A stretch of 64,000 nucleotides of DNA from the sequence record MT612989.1; one strand, written 5' to 3'. This document shows positions 1,269-52,486 of the stretch, piece by piece; position 1 is the first letter of the stretch; every line of letters starts with the position of its first letter. The notes under the pieces are model-generated. The model ran no database searches. It was not told the origin of the DNA and saw only the letters and a list, made by a program, of their open reading frames with translations. Made by a program: the position numbers and the translations under genes.

Positions 1269-3284
1269 TTAGCCGATGATTTCTGCAAAGTCAGCGTCAG
1301 TTGACGTTGCTACGAAGTTCAGCGTAATGTAGTTGATTGACTTAGCAGGTTTCACGTAGATACTTGCTACAAACTCGTTTCTGTCGATGACAGACCCTGG
1401 GTTGTTTGTCTCATCACATACAACACGGAAATCGTAAATACCGCCTAGATCTTGAATGTTAGTCAAGTAAGCGTCGATTTCTGATTTGAAGCTTGAGCGT
1501 GTGAACTCATCGTTCAATTCGAATAGACGATACTTAGCAGCATCTGAGATCGCTTTCTTCAGCAAGTTGAACAGACGACGCACGTTAATGCGGTCAAATG
1601 CACTTGCTTGCTGTGTAGCAGTCTTATCACCGTATAGTACGAAGCCTTGACCTGCAAAGCCCACTACAGGGTTAATACCGATTTGATATAGCGCATCACG
1701 GTGAGCACGACGTAGATCAACTGCTAGACGGTTTACGCCCTTGATTTGACCACGATTGAAGCCCGCTGGTGACATCCAAGGTTGAGAAACTTGGTCAGTG
1801 TAAGCACATAGACCTGCAATATCACCCGCTAGAGGAACCCAACGATTGCGATCTGAGTACTTGTCGTACTGATACTTATAGTTACCGTCAACCACTGCAT
1901 AAGTCGTGCTTACGTTTAGATTGTCAGTTACAGGTTGACCGTTAGTCGGGTCGATACCCGTGCGCCAGCCTTGAATATTCGCTACTGCAACATGCGCTTG
2001 TTTGTTGATTACGTGAACACCCGGTGGCGATACGAAAACAACACAGTCTTGACGTACATTACCAACTGAGTCAATCGCGTATTTCTGAACAGTCGATGCA
2101 ATTGATAGCTCTTCTGCCGCAGCATTACCCGCAATGATCAAGTTTGTGTAAAGCACTTCTGGGTCAGATAGCATATCTAGACCAAGCATCCAGTCGTCTG
2201 CGCCAGCGTTAGCGTCGTAACCACCACCAAGATTGTATGCACCTGAGCCAGTATTCCAACCCTCTGCTATCGCAGTGATGTACGCAGAACCGCTATTTTC
2301 AAAGTACTCGTCGATGAAAATAGATTGACCGTTCACGTCTTTGTCACCTGGGTTCGTAGAAACGATGAACGCTTCTTCAACTTCACCAGATACGCGAACA
2401 ATTACAGCGTATTGGTTGCTGTTTGCAGGGCCGAAAGTGAAGTAACTAGCTAGGTTGATTGAACGAGTACCACCATCTGGGTAGATTGGTAGATCGATGT
2501 CACCTAGTGTATGACCAGCCGCGAATGCAAATGCAGTCTGATAGTCAGCGTAGTTAATCACTTCAACAGAAATGTTGTCACCGTAGCTACCAACATAACG
2601 TGCAGCAATACGAGAGAAACCTTGCTTCTCGATTAGATCAGCATATTTCAGTGCACCGCCTTCAGTTTCAATCTCTGTTAACGCGCCTGTTGACAATTCG
2701 ATATTAGGGAAGTATACTGAACCAGTATCGATAATTTCAATCGCAGAAAGTGCAATATCACCTTGAGTTGGTTGTAGTGTAACTGTACCCACGCCCGGGT
2801 AGTTCCCGTCAGCTTTAGCAGCCGCAACGATCTCTGCCGAAGGCAAGAAAATCTTAGTTGCTGCGTTGTTGTTACCCGCATCTACTTCAAGTACTTTACC
2901 TTTTTCAGTAAGCGGACCAACACCTGAGTAAGTAATCGTGATTTCATCACCAACAACACAGCCGTTTGATGCACCTAGCGTGTATTCAACAGCGTTGTAT
3001 AATGCAGTCGCGTTCTGAGCACTTGACTCATCACAGATACGCACTAGACGTAGATCGTTACCATACTTCAAGAAGTTGTTCGCAGTCATGAATGATGCTG
3101 CGGTATAGTCGTTTGGACGACCGAAAATAGTAACCAAGTCGGACTCTGAAGTTACTTGAGTGATGCTGTATGCTGGACCCCACTCAAATTTCCCCACCAT
3201 AGCAGCACGCCCTGTAGACGCACGACCGATAGCACTTGCAAGGTTAATCTCTTTATTTTCGACACCCGGAGATAAAAGAGTCAT
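1269..3284 (-). CDS. gp18: Tail sheath protein
   Basis: 671 aa; MTLLSPGVENKE, GKFEWGP, WMSPAG, FDRINVRRLF, KPAKSINYITLNF. Confidence 0.97.
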   Translation of the reverse strand: MTLLSPGVENKEINLASAIGRASTGRAAMVGKFEWGPAYSITQVTSESDLVTIFGRPNDYTAASFMTANNFLKYGNDLRLVRICDESSAQNATALYNAVEYTLGASNGCVVGDEITITYSGVGPLTEKGKVLEVDAGNNNAATKIFLPSAEIVAAAKADGNYPGVGTVTLQPTQGDIALSAIEIIDTGSVYFPNIELSTGALTEIETEGGALKYADLIEKQGFSRIAARYVGSYGDNISVEVINYADYQTAFAFAAGHTLGDIDLPIYPDGGTRSINLASYFTFGPANSNQYAVIVRVSGEVEEAFIVSTNPGDKDVNGQSIFIDEYFENSGSAYITAIAEGWNTGSGAYNLGGGYDANAGADDWMLGLDMLSDPEVLYTNLIIAGNAAAEELSIASTVQKYAIDSVGNVRQDCVVFVSPPGVHVINKQAHVAVANIQGWRTGIDPTNGQPVTDNLNVSTTYAVVDGNYKYQYDKYSDRNRWVPLAGDIAGLCAYTDQVSQPWMSPAGFNRGQIKGVNRLAVDLRRAHRDALYQIGINPVVGFAGQGFVLYGDKTATQQASAFDRINVRRLFNLLKKAISDAAKYRLFELNDEFTRSSFKSEIDAYLTNIQDLGGIYDFRVVCDETNNPGSVIDRNEFVASIYVKPAKSINYITLNFVATSTDADFAEIIG

Positions 3285-3321
3285 TTATTTTTCCTTACCA
3301 TTAAGTTGTTTGTTCATTTAA

Positions 3322-3329
3322 TATTTATA
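3322..3329 (-). promoter_or_regulatory. T4-type late promoter TATAAATA for gene 18
   Basis: Exact TATAAATA on the minus strand, 38 nt upstream of gene 18 start. Confidence 0.85.
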
Positions 3330-3330
3330 A

Positions 3331-5641
<2,311 letters not shown>

Positions 5642-5751: not shown

Positions 5752-6300
5752 TTAAGCGTCAGTGTCTCCACGAACAGTAATAGTTGCAGTTTCTAATGCT
5801 GCATCTGCACCTGCATTGATAGTACGTCTAACCCAAATTGCTCGATATTCGCCTGCTGCTAAATTACCGATATCAAGCCCAGATTCGAATGTCGAATGTT
5901 CACCGAAAATAACTGTTGACAATTCAGTACCCGAATCAACTTCGTCATCTAGAGTGATAAGAGAATCAACGCCGTTAAGCGCCACTGGGTCTAGACCTAG
6001 CTCGATAGTAGAATCTGCCGATGCTGTATTGGCAGACATATACACCATTGCATCATACAAAGTTAGCGATGGGTGGTTATTTTTGACGTAAATTAAGCGA
6101 TACTCAACACGACCTGAAGAAGCTTCAGATGAAGGTACCGCATCGAAAAGATCATGAACTTGACCTGAAACTAGCTCGGTAGCACTGATACCACCACCCA
6201 GTGAATCAACTTCTTGATCGTTTGTGTTGCCGTTTCCCGGCGAAGCCGCAACTACGTGCAGACTTTTATTAAATCTTAAATCACCTGTTACGATAGGCAT
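5752..6300 (-). CDS. Hypothetical late (probably virion) protein between genes 15 and 16
   Basis: 182 aa acidic beta-rich ORF; late-promoter-like CTAAATA at about 6334-6340. Confidence 0.75.
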   Translation of the reverse strand: MPIVTGDLRFNKSLHVVAASPGNGNTNDQEVDSLGGGISATELVSGQVHDLFDAVPSSEASSGRVEYRLIYVKNNHPSLTLYDAMVYMSANTASADSTIELGLDPVALNGVDSLITLDDEVDSGTELSTVIFGEHSTFESGLDIGNLAAGEYRAIWVRRTINAGADAALETATITVRGDTDA

Positions 6301-8266: not shown

Positions 8267-9193
8267 TCACCCCATGAATACGCCAAGCGGAACGGTCAGT
8301 GACATAAGTTCTTCACGCAAGCGATTCATTTCTTCTTCTGCCTCTGCGTAAATCTCTTTACCGTCTACTGTAATACCACCTGGTAATTGAAGACCTTGGT
8401 GCTTCTTCAGAATCGTACCGTTAAGCTGTTTAACCATAGCAGTAGCCATGTCTTTAACCCAACGCACGGAATATGCATTCTGTTCAGCGAACTGATTAGG
8501 GTTACCGATTGTGTTATTCTGTCTTAGAATCGCATACGGGTCATCCCAACGCTCTTGCGCTGTAGTGTCTTCATATGAACCAATTGTTGCTGCTTTGTTA
8601 CCGATGATACCAGTCGCAGATTCAGAAACTAACAATGCACTAGGAACATATGCTTCGACTACAACAACTTCATTCGGTTGCAAATTGGCATTGATGCGCA
8701 ATTGTTTGTTAACACCATTATACCAGTAATCGTGTTCTGGTGACATTAAGTCCATCATCAAACTTTTGTATGACATCAAGTTCCAATAATCACTTAAACC
8801 ACCACTACCGCCTAACATTCCTTGATGATACGAATTGCATGAACCTTGACCTGCCCCGCCCGCTAGACCTTGTAAAAAGTCGCTGAACCATGAGTATGTC
8901 GCAGTCCCGTCCATTGTGAAGAAGCTACTCTCACCGCGCAAAATTTTTGTGATCGCAGTCGCAGGGATATCAAGATCTATGATACCTGTTTGAGCTTGTT
9001 CTTCAGACAATGAAATGATAGAATATGTTTTGTTCACCCCGTCTGGGTGATATTCAATGTAAAGTTCTAGCGCACGTGAAATGCAGTCGTATATCTGATC
9101 TTCAGATACTTCGACGTTGACAATAGGCGCACCAAGGCGCCTTAAAATCAAATCTTTCATTTCACGAGGCGATGTAGCGTTATACGCTTGCAT
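8267..9193 (-). CDS. gp13: Neck protein
   Basis: LKDLILRRLG-like MKDLILRRLGAPIVNVEV, WVKDMATAMVK, LPGGITVDG. Confidence 0.93.
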   Translation of the reverse strand: MQAYNATSPREMKDLILRRLGAPIVNVEVSEDQIYDCISRALELYIEYHPDGVNKTYSIISLSEEQAQTGIIDLDIPATAITKILRGESSFFTMDGTATYSWFSDFLQGLAGGAGQGSCNSYHQGMLGGSGGLSDYWNLMSYKSLMMDLMSPEHDYWYNGVNKQLRINANLQPNEVVVVEAYVPSALLVSESATGIIGNKAATIGSYEDTTAQERWDDPYAILRQNNTIGNPNQFAEQNAYSVRWVKDMATAMVKQLNGTILKKHQGLQLPGGITVDGKEIYAEAEEEMNRLREELMSLTVPLGVFMG

Positions 9194-39144: not shown

Positions 39145-39159
39145 CGAGAGTACATTGGT

Positions 39160-39282
39160 CGAGTGTTGGTGTAGTGGCAGCACACGTAGCATACTGTAAT
39201 CAGACATGATTATATTCAGCAACCAATTTACGCATATCATAGGGAGATCGTGGGAACGGTTCGATTCCGTTACACTCGACCA
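39160..39282 (+). ncRNA. tRNA-like RNA A with enlarged anticodon arm carrying the CWGCA motif
   Basis: Acceptor CGAGTGT/ACACTCG-A-CCA, D arm, T arm AACGG-TTCGATT-CCGTT; motif G39208, CAGCAA 39217. Confidence 0.8.
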
Positions 39283-39315
39283 ATGTACTCTCACTAACAA
39301 AGCGAGGTGGACAAT

Positions 39316-39471: not shown

Positions 39472-39541
39472 CTAAGGCAAATATAACTAGAGGATTTTTG
39501 GTGCTTGTGGTTAATCACAAGCACTCTCAAGAACATATTGA

Positions 39542-39663
39542 GCAGGGTTGGTGTAGTGGCTAGCACACGTAGCATAAACGCAAGCTGTTAAGTTTGTATT
39601 CTGCAATCAATTTAGCATATCATTTCCAAGATCGTGACGCAGGTTCGAATCCTGCACCCTGCT
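39542..39663 (+). ncRNA. tRNA-like RNA B (paralogue of A)
   Basis: Acceptor GCAGGGT/ACCCTGC, T arm GCAGG-TTCGAAT-CCTGC, no encoded CCA; motif G39592, CTGCAA 39601. Confidence 0.8.
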
Positions 39664-39681
39664 CAATATGTTTTTACATTG

Positions 39682-39794
39682 GTGAAGTTAGTTCAGTTGG
39701 TTAGAATGCCGGCCAAAAAAACGAAGTCTGATAAGATTTCATTCTGCATTCACATGCACGCCGGAGGTCGCAGGTTCGAGTCCTGCACTTCACC
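39682..39794 (+). ncRNA. tRNA-like RNA C (tRNA-Asp-like body, anticodon replaced by motif insert)
   Basis: GTTCAGTTGGTTAGAATGCCGGCC...CACGCCGGAGGTCGCAGGTTCGAGTCC; motif G39735, CTGCAT 39744. Confidence 0.8.
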
Positions 39795-39804
39795 TTCAAA
39801 TTCT

Positions 39805-39929
39805 GGAGAGTTAGCTCAGTCTGGTAGAGCAAAAGAATGTTAAAGAATACTGACAAGCATTCATGCTGCAAACCTTAATAACTAGGTAAATCTTTTTGTC
39901 ACGTGGTTCAAATCCCGTACTCTCCACCA
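39805..39929 (+). ncRNA. tRNA-like RNA D with motif insert
   Basis: GGAGAGT/ACTCTCC-A-CCA, canonical D arm, AAAGA/TCTTT stem; motif G39857, CTGCAA 39866. Confidence 0.8.
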
Positions 39930-40705: not shown

Positions 40706-40945
40706 GCCGCTAACTGGCGTACAATACACAGTGTATTCCCAACATTAGTGCAGACGTAGGCTCGCAACCTACGTTGGTACCGAATCACTGGGACCGAGTA
40801 GAAAGTGCATGTGAGATGTCGAAGTCTTGTATGTAGAAATAACGCTCGGCTGCTCTGAAATGCTGATTAGCTCTTACTTCGAAACTCTAATTGGGTGGAA
40901 GAGGTGTTGTGTTTGACGTGTGTTCGATTCACACGAGCGGCGCCA
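40706..40945 (+). ncRNA. 240-nt RNA with tRNA-like ends (tmRNA-like topology)
   Basis: GCCGCT/AGCGGC acceptor, G-CCA end, T arm GTGTG-TTCGATT-CACAC, ACAATAC/GTGTTGT closing helix. Confidence 0.65.
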
Positions 40946-40958
40946 AGAGGAAATTATA

Positions 40959-41485: not shown

Positions 41486-41601
41486 AGTCGGGTAGCTCAG
41501 TGGTAGAGCACGAAGAATGATACTGACAAGTATCGCTCCAGCACTCCTTCAATTGCCTGTTAAGCACGTGGTCGCTGGTTCGAATCCAGCCCCGACTACC
41601 A
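41486..41601 (+). ncRNA. tRNA-like RNA E: GTT anticodon arm interrupted by 41-nt motif insert
   Basis: AGTCGGG/CCCGACT-A-CCA; CG[insert]TGC-CTGTTAA-GCACG; motif G41530, CAGCAC 41539. Confidence 0.8.
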
Positions 41602-42479: not shown

Positions 42480-42682
42480 GTTAGTGTTGTTTGATTGAAG
42501 CTCGCTTTCGCACATTCCCGAAACTGCTTCTACGAATTGATACGCTTAGGACCGTATCTCGTTAAGTACTGTCGAGATGATAGAATTTAACGAACTTTTT
42601 CATAAATTAGTGTTTATGATGTCTTGAGCGAGTGTTAATATTAACACATAGAAAATGAAAACGTTAAGTTCTTCAAAATAAA

Positions 42683-42814
42683 TTCAAAAAGATGTTTACA
42701 ACGATATAAACATCGTGTACAATGAAGAAAAGCGAAACATCATTCAAAATCGAATGAAAAGTTTTTCAAAAAGATGTTTACAACGATAAAAACATCATGT
42801 ACAATGAAGAAAAG
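42683..42814 (+). promoter_or_regulatory. Duplicated 50-bp early promoter unit
   Basis: 42683-42732 and 42765-42814 differ at 2 positions; TTTACA-17-TACAAT. Confidence 0.85.
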
Positions 42815-42832: not shown

Positions 42833-42909
42833 GCGCAAGTAGCCCAATTGGCAGAGGCACTGGTCTTAGAAACCAGAAGTTAAGAGTTCGAATCTCTTCT
42901 TGCGTACCA
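42833..42909 (+). tRNA. tRNA-Leu(TAG), short variable loop
   Basis: CTGGT-CTTAGAA-ACCAG, CCA. Confidence 0.9.
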
Positions 42910-44262: not shown

Positions 44263-44322
44263 AAGTAATCTTACAGCAAACAATACAAAACTTTTATTTG
44301 GAAAAAGCAAAAAGGATTACTG
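44263..44322 (+). ncRNA. Inter-tRNA RNA F with open-form motif
   Basis: AA-GTAATC-TTA-CAGCAA ... GATTAC-TG. Confidence 0.7.
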
Positions 44323-44648: not shown

Positions 44649-44722
44649 TGGGGATTGGTGTAAAGGCAGCATAACGTACTTTGAATGCGTTGGTATCAGT
44701 TCGAATCTGTTATCCCCAGCCA
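44649..44722 (+). tRNA. tRNA-Gln(TTG)
   Basis: ACGTA-CTTTGAA-TGCGT, G-CCA. Confidence 0.9.
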
Positions 44723-44729
44723 AATACCG

Positions 44730-44845
44730 AAGAGTGTTTTCAGCAAACAATTTACTAATATTCTTATCGGAAAGAAATGTTTAGGGTTCGATTCCCTTTC
44801 AGTGTTGGTATCACTGGTCTGGACGACGCTAGTAATAACACTCAG
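44730..44845 (+). ncRNA. RNA G: motif stem at termini enclosing a T arm and closed acceptor-like hairpin (Y-RNA/YrlA-like)
   Basis: AA-GAGTGT-TTT-CAGCAA ... AGGG-TTCGATT-CCCT, TCAGTG/CACTGG ... ACACTC-AG. Confidence 0.65.
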
Positions 44846-44849
44846 TAAC

Positions 44850-44925
44850 GCCCTGATAGCACAACTGGCAGTGCAGCTCACTTGTAATGAGCAGGTTCGC
44901 GGTTCGAATCCGTGTCAGGGCACCA
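44850..44925 (+). tRNA. tRNA-Thr(TGT)
   Basis: GCTCA-CTTGTAA-TGAGC, CCA. Confidence 0.92.
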
Positions 44926-44949
44926 TTTTCAAACAACTGCGAGAATAAC

Positions 44950-45450: not shown

Positions 45451-45568
45451 AGAGAGACAATATACAGCAAACAATTGAAATTACTTAAAAGAAGTGATGA
45501 TCTTAACCTGGGCTGATTTTAACCTGAGCTTGCTTAGGCGCAGCTTGAAAGGAAAGATTCTCTCTGTC
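45451..45568 (+). ncRNA. RNA I with open-form motif (less regular stem)
   Basis: AGAGAGACAATATA-CAGCAA ... ATTCTCTCTGTC. Confidence 0.5.
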
Positions 45569-49039: not shown

Positions 49040-49387
49040 ATGTTTGTAATGATTGATGATATGCGTGATATCGATAAGTTCACTGCGCCTGAAATTTCCG
49101 CAGATCAGAAGCTTGTTTTGCGTACGTATGAAGACGGTATGAAATTCGTCAAACATACGAATCTTACAGATATTACTTTATTCATGGACAATGATCTAGG
49201 CGGTGCTCTTGGTCATGAGGGATATGATATTCTCTCTCATGCAATTGATCATCGTAACTTCCCACGCACAGTTGTTCTAGTAACGAGTAACCCTGTTGCT
49301 CACTCTAAGATGACTATGATGTTGATGAGTACACTTCAATATAAACGTGTGGGTTCTATCTTTATGAGGCAAGATACATGCACTTAA
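49040..49387 (+). CDS. Cyclic-phosphate-processing receiver-like domain protein
   Basis: IDDMR, MDNDLG..EGYDIL, VTSNPVAHSKM pattern of that family (recognised from memory). Confidence 0.7.
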   Translation: MFVMIDDMRDIDKFTAPEISADQKLVLRTYEDGMKFVKHTNLTDITLFMDNDLGGALGHEGYDILSHAIDHRNFPRTVVLVTSNPVAHSKMTMMLMSTLQYKRVGSIFMRQDTCT

Positions 49388-50399: not shown

Positions 50400-50427
50400 T
50401 TTACATGCATTAAAATTCGCGTATAAT
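50400..50427 (+). promoter_or_regulatory. Early promoter of Ro60-like gene
   Basis: A tract, GTGTTTACA..TATAAT. Confidence 0.8.
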
Positions 50428-50437
50428 CACTTCATCA

Positions 50438-50482
50438 AAGACATTTTACAGCAATTAATTATGAGGAAATGAACAATGTCAG
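50438..50482 (+). promoter_or_regulatory. Leader hairpin with CWGCA motif enclosing RBS and AUG of Ro60-like gene
   Basis: AA-GACATT-TTA-CAGCAA..GAGG..AATGTC-AG; ATG 50476 lies in the 3' strand. Confidence 0.75.
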
Positions 50483-51912
50483 TATTTATGAACGCAATGC
50501 AAACAAACGATTCACGCACAGCAAACGGTGCAGTTACTCACAGCACTTCAGGTAACGAGTGTCTAAACTTGTTCTTCGGTATTGCTGCTATGCGTGGCAA
50601 CGATCAGTCTAAAACACTGTTCGGTCGTGCGTTTGCAGAAAACCCAGAACTAGCGACTCGCATTCTTTTGTGGTCTCGTGATGTTCGAGGTGGTGCGGGT
50701 GAACGTGGTACTTTCCGTACTCTATTCACTAAACTTTGTAATGAACAGCCTGACGTAGCTCGTGCTGTAATGTCGAAAATTCCAGAACTAGGTCGTTACG
50801 ATGACTTGATTTCTGCTTTCGGTACACGTCTTGAACAAGATGCGATCACAATGTGGTCGAACGCAATTGTCAATGACAAGAATGGTCTTGCTGCGAAGTG
50901 GTTCCCACGTGAAAACAGCAAAAACGGTCATGTGTTCAAGCGCACAATCAAGTCTCTTGGCGTAACTGCGAAGCAGTGGCGTAAGATTCTGTCGCTTCTG
51001 TCTGACACTGTTGAGCAGAAGATGTGTGCGCAAAAATGGGATGCAATCGACTTCGGTAAGTTGCCTTCTGTAGCGTCTGCTCGTTATCAACAAGCATTCG
51101 GTCGTAACGCTTCAACACGTTACACAAACTACATCGAGTCACTTCAAAAAGGTGAAGCGAAGATCAACGCTGGCGCATTGTTCCCATACGATGTCGTTAA
51201 GAGCGTTAGTCACGGTAATGCGTCTGTAGCGAACGAGCAATGGAAAGCTCTGCCAAACTACATGGAAGGTTCTGATGAACGCATCATCCCTGTTGTTGAC
51301 GTGTCTGGCTCTATGAGCACGCCAATTAACGCAGGTACAGACCGTTCAGGTGTGACTTGTAAGCAAGTTGCAATGTCTCTTGGGATTTATGTTGCTGAAC
51401 GCAATGAAGGCATCTTCAAAGATCAGTTCATTTCGTTCTCAAGCGACCCGCACTTCCACCAGTTGCGCGGCTCTTCATTGAAAGAGCGTCTTGATAACAT
51501 GAATCGTTCAGGCGAAGACATGAGTACGAACATCGGTAAGTGCTTTGATGTTCTGCTAGAGCGTGCGAAGCGTGCAAATCTTTCACAAGAAGATATGCCA
51601 ACCAAGTTGCTTATCATGAGTGACATGGAATTCGATCAAGCAAACACTGGTGGTGGTTGGTACGGTCGCGGTGAACCTGCGAACTTCGATGCAATCAAAG
51701 CCAAGTACGCACGTGCTGGTTATGAAATGCCACAACTGGTCTTCTGGAACATTCGTGGTCGTCTTGGCAACGTTCCGGTTAAAGCTGGTGAAGCGGGTAC
51801 TGCACTGGTATCTGGTTGTAGCCCATCTATCTTGACTTCACTGTTGGGTGGTGAGCTTGAGCCAATCAAGATCATGATGAAAACTGTAGGCGTCGAACGC
51901 TACAGCTTTTAA
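50476..51912 (+). CDS. Ro60-like TROVE plus vWA protein (DUF2828-type)
   Basis: TANGA, RDVRGGAGER, PELGRYDDL, LAAKWFPRE; MIDAS VVDVSGSM; SDMEFD; VFWNI. Confidence 0.85.
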   Translation: MSVFMNAMQTNDSRTANGAVTHSTSGNECLNLFFGIAAMRGNDQSKTLFGRAFAENPELATRILLWSRDVRGGAGERGTFRTLFTKLCNEQPDVARAVMSKIPELGRYDDLISAFGTRLEQDAITMWSNAIVNDKNGLAAKWFPRENSKNGHVFKRTIKSLGVTAKQWRKILSLLSDTVEQKMCAQKWDAIDFGKLPSVASARYQQAFGRNASTRYTNYIESLQKGEAKINAGALFPYDVVKSVSHGNASVANEQWKALPNYMEGSDERIIPVVDVSGSMSTPINAGTDRSGVTCKQVAMSLGIYVAERNEGIFKDQFISFSSDPHFHQLRGSSLKERLDNMNRSGEDMSTNIGKCFDVLLERAKRANLSQEDMPTKLLIMSDMEFDQANTGGGWYGRGEPANFDAIKAKYARAGYEMPQLVFWNIRGRLGNVPVKAGEAGTALVSGCSPSILTSLLGGELEPIKIMMKTVGVERYSF

Positions 51913-51955: not shown

Positions 51956-52486
51956 GTGAAAATGTTCGATTGGGAAGCGATAGAAACAGCTATCAATAAC
52001 AGTCATCCAAATAGCACAATATACGTTGGGTGTGATAGTAAGCGTAAAAGTGACATGATTAGTTACGCGACTGTGATCATAATTCATCTTGAAGGTAGTA
52101 AAGGTGCTCAAGTGTTTAAAGCAGTTGAGACTGAACCTGCATACTTATCATGTAAAGATGGTATCAGAAGTCGATTGATGAATGAAGTATACAAAGCGGG
52201 TGAAACTGCACTAATGGTTAAGCCAATGTGCGGTACTAGAGGCTTTGAAGTTCACGTTGACATCAACCCTGACCCTACACACAAATCTCACGTTGCCTAT
52301 AACGAAGCTAAAGGTACTATATTGGGATATGTTGGTCAAGAGCCCGTGTTCAAACCTGATGCGTTTGCTGCGTCTTGTGCTGCTGATTACGACGCAGTTC
52401 GAAGAGCAGATAAAATCGCTAAACGAAAAGAACTTAGACGAGCTAAACGAAAAGCAAAGAAACAAAAAACAAAAGGGCGCAAATAG
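51956..52486 (+). CDS. RNase H-like protein, YkuK family
   Basis: IYVGCDS, RLMNEV, EVHVDIN, KPDAFAASCAAD. Confidence 0.85.
   Translation: MKMFDWEAIETAINNSHPNSTIYVGCDSKRKSDMISYATVIIIHLEGSKGAQVFKAVETEPAYLSCKDGIRSRLMNEVYKAGETALMVKPMCGTRGFEVHVDINPDPTHKSHVAYNEAKGTILGYVGQEPVFKPDAFAASCAADYDAVRRADKIAKRKELRRAKRKAKKQKTKGRK

Follow-up and report, generated by a model that had tools for sequence, protein, structure and literature searches.

An unannotated, permuted tRNA-like RNA in the tRNA array of Vibrio phage R11Z is probably the partner of a Ro60-like phage protein

A short spacer in the tRNA array of Vibrio phage vB_ValM_R11Z encodes an RNA, here termed RNA G, that is probably the unannotated partner of a Ro60-like protein of the same phage. 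Ro60 and its Y RNAs form a conserved, poorly understood RNA-quality-control particle, and why bacterial Y RNAs mimic tRNA is an open question of the field. RNA G is best explained as a permuted-tRNA, Y-like RNA of about 127 nucleotides that would be released from a tRNA transcript, would be docked by the Ro60-like protein through a terminal stem (P1) followed by CAGCAA, and would act in RNA surveillance, repair or protection. This reading, favoured here with a confidence clearly above even yet well short of certainty, builds on computation that establishes the fold of the RNA, the RNA family to which it belongs, the Ro60-like structure of the protein and the linkage between the two genes.

The stretch of DNA analysed (the window, 64,000 nucleotides in length) is identical to positions 124001-188000 of record MT612989.1 and comes from R11Z, a Schizotequatrovirus related to KVP40. 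At 39-48 kb it carries 28 tRNA genes on the plus strand. RNA G occupies the whole 127-base spacer (44723-44849, plus strand) between two of them, as defined by its sequence and the flanking tRNAs. The encoded CCA of the upstream neighbour, tRNA-Gln (44649-44722, plus strand), ends at 44722, and the downstream neighbour, tRNA-Thr (44850-44925, plus strand), starts at 44850. The R11Z record places a hypothetical coding sequence, vBValMR11Z_244 (44685-44948), across tRNA-Gln, RNA G and tRNA-Thr, and the KVP40 record has no annotation at the site of RNA G. Membership of RNA G in this coding sequence was ruled out: the frame overlaps two tRNAs and is broken by indels, and coding at RNA G is excluded because relatives differ there by insertions or deletions of one, two and three bases. 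vBValMR11Z_244 is almost certainly spurious. Similar small open reading frames have been called over the tRNA arrays of QD01 and CZ01.

The transcript containing RNA G likely starts at 42655-42810, where two tandem copies of a repeat of about 80 bases, each with a promoter-like TTTACA, 17 bases and TACAAT, sit just upstream of tRNA-Leu at 42833. The promoter-like sites fall at 42695-42805, and no terminator-like site was found on the plus strand between them (about 42.7 kb) and RNA G. Standard models of structured RNA return little for the spacer itself. A scan of the whole window at Rfam gathering thresholds yields only tRNAs, more permissive Rfam scans give no genuine match at RNA G, and no Rfam family matches the RNA G family; ARAGORN detects no tRNA in 44723-44849, and the tRNA model RF00005 gives RNA G 12.7 bits against a gathering score of 29. 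Elsewhere in the array, a segment of about 240 bases (40706-40946) has GCCGCT at its start and, at its close, a T arm GTGTG-TTCGATT-CACAC with AGCGGC and GCCA after it. These tRNA-like ends, with the CCA encoded, enclose an insert of about 190 bases, and neither Rfam nor ARAGORN matches the segment.

The structural elements of RNA G all lie on the plus strand, enclosed by a terminal stem. In this stem, P1, the 5' strand GAGTGTT (44732-44738) pairs with AACACTC (44837-44843), after which comes a tail, AGT. Two bases past the 5' strand stands a signature motif, CAGCAAACAA (44741-44750), which is predicted to be single-stranded. The interior comprises a V hairpin, TTCTT/AAGAA (44761-44776); a T arm, AGGG-TTCGATT-CCCT (44783-44797), with a stem of 4 bp and the loop TTCGATT; a closed acceptor-like hairpin, TCAGTG/CACTGG (44799-44817), with 5 bp, a U-G pair and the loop TTGGTAT; and the remnant of a D arm (44817-44832), which retains GG at 44821-44822 and holds the pair of strings CTGG/CTAG (44819-44822/44829-44832). 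The original prediction, which had read RNA G as a Y RNA with the permuted layout of bacterial YrlA, quoted strings that are all found in RNA G where it had placed them.

The minimum-energy fold of RNA G includes P1, the T arm and the hairpin after it, at a free energy of -25 kcal/mol that does not differ significantly from that of shuffled sequences (z -0.7 to -1.3). Because the folding energy is no better than that of shuffles, the case for RNA G rests on comparison. Its orthologs, found in 30 phage records, are 81-100% identical (81% in nt-1), and covariation was counted on ten aligned phages of the KVP40 group, which represent nine distinct sequences. Within this group P1 is invariant save one change from U-A to U-G, CAGCAAACAA is invariant in the ten relatives, and the most conserved block of the molecule consists of the 21 bases from the stem through CAGCAAACAATT. 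The V hairpin has an invariant stem and a variable loop. Double-sided changes affect two of the four pairs of the T stem, the outer of which shows four pair types, and the more distant phage D480 adds a U-A pair there. The closed hairpin is compensatory at two of its six pairs, to which D480 adds a third, and its loop is invariant except in ValKK3 and phi-Grn1.

Four of the five elements originally proposed are real, P1, the T arm and the closed helix among them. The fifth, a D hairpin formed by CTGG/CTAG, fails, its third pair being unpaired in six of the nine distinct KVP40-group sequences. An alternative helix of 3 bp, GUC at 44817-44819 with GAC at 44825-44827, fits all sequences, with no double change to back any pair. 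A D arm this degenerate means that a genuine tRNA-like elbow may not form in RNA G. The prediction had staked itself on a T arm and a closed acceptor helix that form and are conserved in relatives; it withstands this comparison because the order of stem, T arm and closed helix holds and is conserved. A promoter-like or other DNA site was also considered for CAGCAAACAA. With three mismatches allowed the motif is no commoner in the window than in shuffled sequence, and with at most two, five of its seven matches lie on the plus strand within the tRNA region. Its strand specificity and its constant position after a covarying RNA stem make a DNA site unlikely.

Beyond the KVP40 group, homologs were collected with two covariance models, R1, built from RNA G, and R2, built from distant full forms only. 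Loci for R1 were drawn from IMG/VR by a pattern consisting of CAGCAAACAA, a gap and GGTTCGA. The more than 120 loci so obtained were mostly chance matches and became useful only once filtered with R1; because the recruiting pattern contained both strings, the conservation of CAGCAAACAA and GGTTCGA in this first distant set is a product of selection. R1, which scores RNA G at 156.6 bits, identifies full-length homologs in many large-phage contigs. Folded individually, the distant forms have the stem, CAGCAAACAA, the V hairpin, a T arm of 5 bp and a closed acceptor-like stem of 7 bp. Two bases, UA or UG, lead from there into a standard D arm, and an A-rich linker connects this arm to the closing strand. 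A short tail after the stem also recurs, as UG, GU or GA; it reads AGU in RNA G and UGU or UGG in most distant full forms.

Compensatory change supports this fold throughout its length. RNAalifold, applied to 19 diverse members, recovered P1, the V hairpin, the T arm and the closed hairpin unaided, with compensatory changes at 17 of 20 pairs. Across 11 distant full forms, 97.5% of alignment cells pair, compared with 69% in shuffles and 34-50% with slid partners, and 21 of 26 pairs are compensatory. Covariation extends to all seven pairs of the closed acceptor stem and all four of the V hairpin in the distant forms, and to five of the six pairs of P1 across distant homologs. The D arm occupies its predicted position in these forms, with two compensatory pairs in a 4-bp stem. 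R2 in turn finds its best match in the window at RNA G (50.7 bits, E 2.6e-8), and alignment with the full forms indicates that, of the D arm, RNA G retains the GG but not the 5' half. The distant homologs and the recovery of RNA G by R2 therefore identify it as a member with a decayed D arm. Some members in other phages are likewise embedded between tRNAs. Minimal forms also occur, hairpins of 58-80 bases that consist of P1 and CAGCAA only, without the tRNA-like part, and the constant part across all forms is the terminal stem followed by CAGCAA. As a set of related sequences this Y-RNA-like family of phage RNAs is real and unannotated; its protein binding and its function are putative.

Several siblings of RNA G lie in the same array. 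RNA A (39146-39292, plus strand) follows native tRNA order, with an end stem of 21 bp, a D arm, a hairpin with CAGCAACCAA and a T arm. Its paralog RNA B (39532-39672, plus strand) has an end stem of 17 bp, and both this stem and the T stem covary. RNAs C (39682-39794), D (39805-39926) and E (41486-41598) score as tRNAs (50-54 bits) and contain inserts of 40-50 bases at the anticodon position that bear a weaker version of the motif; RNAs D and E have in common a hairpin with the loop TGACAA. The KVP40 orthologs of C, D and E, tRNA-Pseudo-5, tRNA-Pseudo-4 and tRNA-Pseudo-3, respectively, are annotated as dead tRNAs, whereas RNAs G, A, B and F have no annotation at all. RNA F (44264-44321, plus strand) is a minimal form with a 9-bp stem and CAGCAAACAA and no tRNA-like part, and RNA H (about 45455-45560) joins the module to a different, larger body. 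Both F and H are conserved in the KVP40 group.

RNA G had been proposed to be a circular permutation of RNAs A to E. For A and B the proposal is supported: their elements map one-to-one onto those of RNA G in the same cyclic order, and C to E look like weaker native-order versions. The fold of RNAs A and B opens with a long end stem and a D arm; next come a hairpin with the motif after it, another stem and, last, a T arm. The hairpin that precedes the motif in A and B is the counterpart of P1 of RNA G, capped with a loop, and their open end stem is the counterpart of the closed acceptor hairpin of RNA G. In some permuted forms the D arm sequence of A and B is found again following the T arm. 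R2 gives a full-length match across the junction of RNAs C and D (39726-39856, E 2e-4), which hints at a way in which tandem copies could give rise to a permuted form. Six pairs of P1 are identical to pairs of the inner end stem of RNA A, an identity that suggests recombination between paralogs rather than a simple permutation event.

In keeping with the Y RNA reading, a Ro60-like protein is encoded 5.6 kb downstream of RNA G on the same strand. The gene (50476-51912, plus strand) specifies 478 amino acids with the Pfam domains DUF2828 and DUF7788, arranged as a helical-repeat ring of ARM-like repeats and a vWA domain with the MIDAS motif DVSGS. Pfam TROVE does not match this protein, for which DUF2828 and DUF7788 are the only matches at E<=0.01, and a sequence search against the PDB returns only designed armadillo-repeat proteins; its link to Ro60 required a predicted structure. 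With the AF2 model (pLDDT 79.6) as a query against the PDB, the top nine Foldseek matches are all Ro60/TROVE proteins, aligned over the full length (E 6e-9 to 3.5e-6, TM 0.51-0.62), and the matches after them are vWA domains only. According to this model, the product of 50476-51912 folds like Ro60. Relatives of the protein occur in 710 phage records, some annotated as 'Ro-like RNA binding protein', and the phages with such DUF2828-type Ro60 paralogs include relatives of Felix O1, Listeria A511/P100 and KVP40 as well as Campylobacter and mycobacterial phages. A Pfam scan places RNA-repair-type genes nearby, cREC at 49040-49387 and an RNaseH-like gene at 51956-52486.

The start of the Ro-like gene itself recalls the RNA module. 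Its leader (50440-50483, plus strand) consists of GACATT, TTA, CAGCAA, a Shine-Dalgarno sequence GAGG, AATGTC, which holds the ATG, and AGT, and a sigma-70-like promoter, TTTACA, 17 bases and TATAAT, is found at 50401-50429. The leader is conserved in the KVP40 group, without covariation, and at 8 of 11 loci of distant homologs the ribosome-binding site of the Ro-like gene is closely preceded by the end of a module. The leader may serve as a feedback operator in which the start site mimics the RNA. In Vibrio phage D480 (locus 8368-8958), a homing endonuclease gene directly upstream of the Ro-like gene displaces the usual leader, and a CAGCAA string overlaps the start codon.

Linkage between the RNAs and the Ro-like gene was assessed from both sides. 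Among the 120 loci recruited by the RNA pattern alone, 14 contain a Ro-like gene, which often adjoins the RNA. For the protein side, nine phage lineages were selected by their Ro-like protein only, comprising a Felix O1-like coliphage, Cronobacter S13, Campylobacter CPX, Listeria A511, a mycobacteriophage, and Staphylococcus, Bacillus, Ralstonia and Klebsiella phages. A module was defined as a stem of at least 7 bp, 1-3 bases, CAGCAA, a variable body, the closing strand and a short tail such as UG or GU. By this definition, applied with a simple script rather than a calibrated model, all nine lineages have at least two modules on the strand of the Ro-like gene, compared with 0.3-0.8 modules per 9.4 kb of shuffled sequence. 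The modules lie within about 1.1 kb of the gene in eight of the nine; in Bacillus PBC2, a run of six reaches about 2 kb upstream of it. Some of the modules near Ro-like genes are full permuted tRNA-like forms and others minimal hairpins, and every module found beside these genes has the CAGCAA core after the stem. The stem with CAGCAA is proposed as the docking site because it is the only part common to all forms. Because relatives of RNA G adjoin a Ro60-like gene in many unrelated phages, RNA G is probably the RNA partner of that protein in R11Z.

Odd tRNA annotations occur at some of these loci. In Cronobacter S13 (locus 5896-6138), a 121-base tRNA-Ser call and a 113-base tRNA-OTHER call overlap a family member at 5939-6070, and in Klebsiella KP2025 a 432-base tRNA-Arg call and a tRNA-Pseudo call (locus 2905-3336 and 5130-5216) flank modules at 4635-5099. 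Some of these calls are probably mis-annotated members of the family.

The closest known counterpart is YrlA (RF02553), the Y RNA-like partner of Rsr/Ro60 in bacteria and mycobacteriophages (Chen et al., 2014; PMC4201824). Both YrlA and the phage family pair their 5' and 3' ends as a stem, and in both the interior runs through a V element, a T arm, a loop-closed acceptor stem and a D arm, which amounts to a permuted tRNA. The T loop of both matches the tRNA consensus. Members of both tend to be encoded near a Ro60-type gene and on its strand, and both YrlA/YrlB and the phage family have several Y-like RNAs per locus, some without a tRNA-like part. The YrlA-like order claimed for RNA G, a stem, a T arm and a closed acceptor-like helix, is borne out and is conserved with compensatory changes. 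However, the two groups differ in several respects. The D arm is nearly invariant in YrlA, whereas RNA G has lost half of its own. A further trait of YrlA is that Ro60 binds it and that TruB and DusA modify it. The signature of YrlA is GNCGAAN0-1G near the 5' end; that of the phage family is CAGCAA after the stem. YrlA partners a Pfam TROVE protein, and the presumed partner of the phage family is of Pfam DUF2828/DUF7788. YrlA genes typically lie within about 4 kb of the Ro60 (TROVE) gene on the same strand, as compared with 5.6 kb on the same strand for RNA G and mostly about 1.1 kb or less for family members in other phages. Unlike YrlA, the phage genes sit within tRNA arrays, as RNA G does, although not all members do so, and the permuted form occurs alongside native-order and minimal ones.

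A search with the Rfam YrlA model, suggested as a check of the original prediction, gives no match on RNA G at E<=10 in searches of 9.5 kb and of 142 bases. Distant full forms align to RF02553 from end to end at 28-41 bits (E 1e-5 to 3e-8), with a match over the tRNA-like part and none over the stem; neither they nor RNA G reach the gathering score of 69 bits. Sub-threshold YrlA matches elsewhere in the window straddle tRNA-tRNA junctions, a known artefact of the model (PMC4201824). The YrlA motif GNCGAAN0-1G is not conserved in relatives of RNA G, and CCGAAG, which precedes P1, was rejected as an Rsr motif: some relatives have CCATAG or CCATTG instead. RNA G may be a true Y RNA, as first proposed.

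Phage Ro60 proteins with Y-like RNAs have been described before (PMC4201824; PMC12135203), and TROVE proteins of jumbo phages have been noted (PMC7824862). In Thermus phage phiLo, a phage Ro60 ring is accompanied by the Y-like RNAs Yrl1 and Yrl2, whose genes adjoin that of the protein (PMC12135203; PDB 9KOP, 9L5Y). The phiLo Ro60 is among the best structural matches of the 478-residue protein, at a protein identity of about 15%; the phiLo RNAs were recognised by CGAA within a stem-bulge-stem, and their description mentions no resemblance to tRNA. No description of an RNA family with the stem and CAGCAA was found in the literature, the 22-phage list of Chen et al. (2014) lying outside the comparison. 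In T4, which belongs to a related phage family, a syntenic tRNA cluster encodes the small stable RNAs rnaC and rnaD (species 1 and 2; NC_000866 70908-71171), whose function is unknown. T4 rnaC has a T arm, and rnaD (locus 5054-5172, minus strand) has, towards its 3' end, a hairpin with CAGCAGAAAC (CAGCAG) directly after it, which faintly recalls the module. As homologs, rnaC and rnaD were rejected: R1 and R2 match neither, and within the T4 locus R2 matches nothing but tRNA genes. No Ro-like gene is present in the 12-kb stretch of T4 examined.

Other explanations of RNA G have to account for the same features. One, which we consider unlikely, dispenses with the Ro-like protein: RNA G would be a tRNA decoy that absorbs a host tRNA-targeting nuclease, modification enzyme or synthetase. 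Its closed hairpin would mimic an anticodon arm, with a 5-bp stem, a 7-base loop UUGGUAU, U33 and a purine at 37, and we take this loop to resemble the anticodon loop of tRNA-Thr(GGU). The location of RNA G in the tRNA array of a phage with its own tRNA set agrees with a decoy, as do the recurrence of UUGGU in the same loop of one distant clade and the constancy of the loop over a covarying stem, which suggests that the loop sequence is read. However, ValKK3 and phi-Grn1 have C in place of U33, and most distant members have unrelated loops and a stem of 7 bp that leads through UA into a D arm, which is the geometry of an acceptor. Neither the module of P1 and CAGCAA nor its linkage to the Ro-like gene is explained by a decoy.

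Still less probable is a role in cis, in which RNA G would be a processing or spacer element of the tRNA operon that guides cuts by RNase E, P or Z or stabilises the precursor, with no function as a free RNA. The mature tRNA ends that abut RNA G on both sides would be expected of such an element, and relatives in other phages also lie between tRNAs. Nevertheless, the module occurs outside tRNA arrays, directly upstream or downstream of the Ro-like gene, in Listeria A511, a Staphylococcus phage and a mycobacteriophage, and a covarying fold of five helices exceeds the needs of a processing signal. Finally, a decaying relic without present function, either a pseudo-tRNA or a fragment of an RNA A-like gene after rearrangement, would account for the truncated D arm and for the six pairs that P1 shares with the inner end stem of RNA A, a likeness that recombination between paralogs would produce, but it is disfavoured as highly improbable by conservation in 30 phage records and the distant D480, compensatory changes in two helices and an invariant block of 21 bases.

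From the Y-like reading of RNA G we infer its processing, its protein binding and its biological role. RNA G would be co-transcribed with the tRNAs, 3' processing of tRNA-Gln would set its 5' end, and cleavage by RNase P at the 5' end of tRNA-Thr would set its 3' end. Like bacterial YrlA, the resulting molecule would amount to a tRNA with an open anticodon side and a closed acceptor end. The Ro-like protein (50476-51912) would dock on P1 and CAGCAA, and the tRNA-like part would serve as a tRNA elbow for a nuclease or a factor that recognises tRNAs, as has been proposed for YrlA. During infection, the particle of RNA G and the Ro-like protein may then survey, repair or protect structured RNAs, tRNAs among them. 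The adjacent RNA-repair-type genes, cREC and the RNaseH-like gene here and RtcB near the Ro-like gene of Listeria phage A511, would fit such a role in RNA surveillance or repair.

A broader reading, held tentatively and rated a little below an even chance, extends this role to the whole family. Phage Y-like RNAs with the stem and CAGCAA, in native, permuted and minimal form, would be the partners of DUF2828-type Ro60 proteins in more than 700 phages and would constitute a common device of tRNA and RNA surveillance or of counter-defence; mimicry of the RNA by the start site of the Ro-like gene may provide feedback control. The findings point to a second and apparently much commoner phage version of the Ro/Y system, with another protein subfamily and another docking motif. 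For annotation, they imply that 'pseudo-tRNAs', over-long 'tRNAs' and small hypothetical open reading frames in the arrays of KVP40, S13, KP2025 and R11Z are likely genes of this family. They also supply a candidate ligand for the 'RNA-binding protein' annotated in hundreds of phages. Moreover, the permuted, native-order and minimal RNAs form a natural series in genetically tractable phages of laboratory hosts, so that the stem module and the tRNA-like module can be tested separately.
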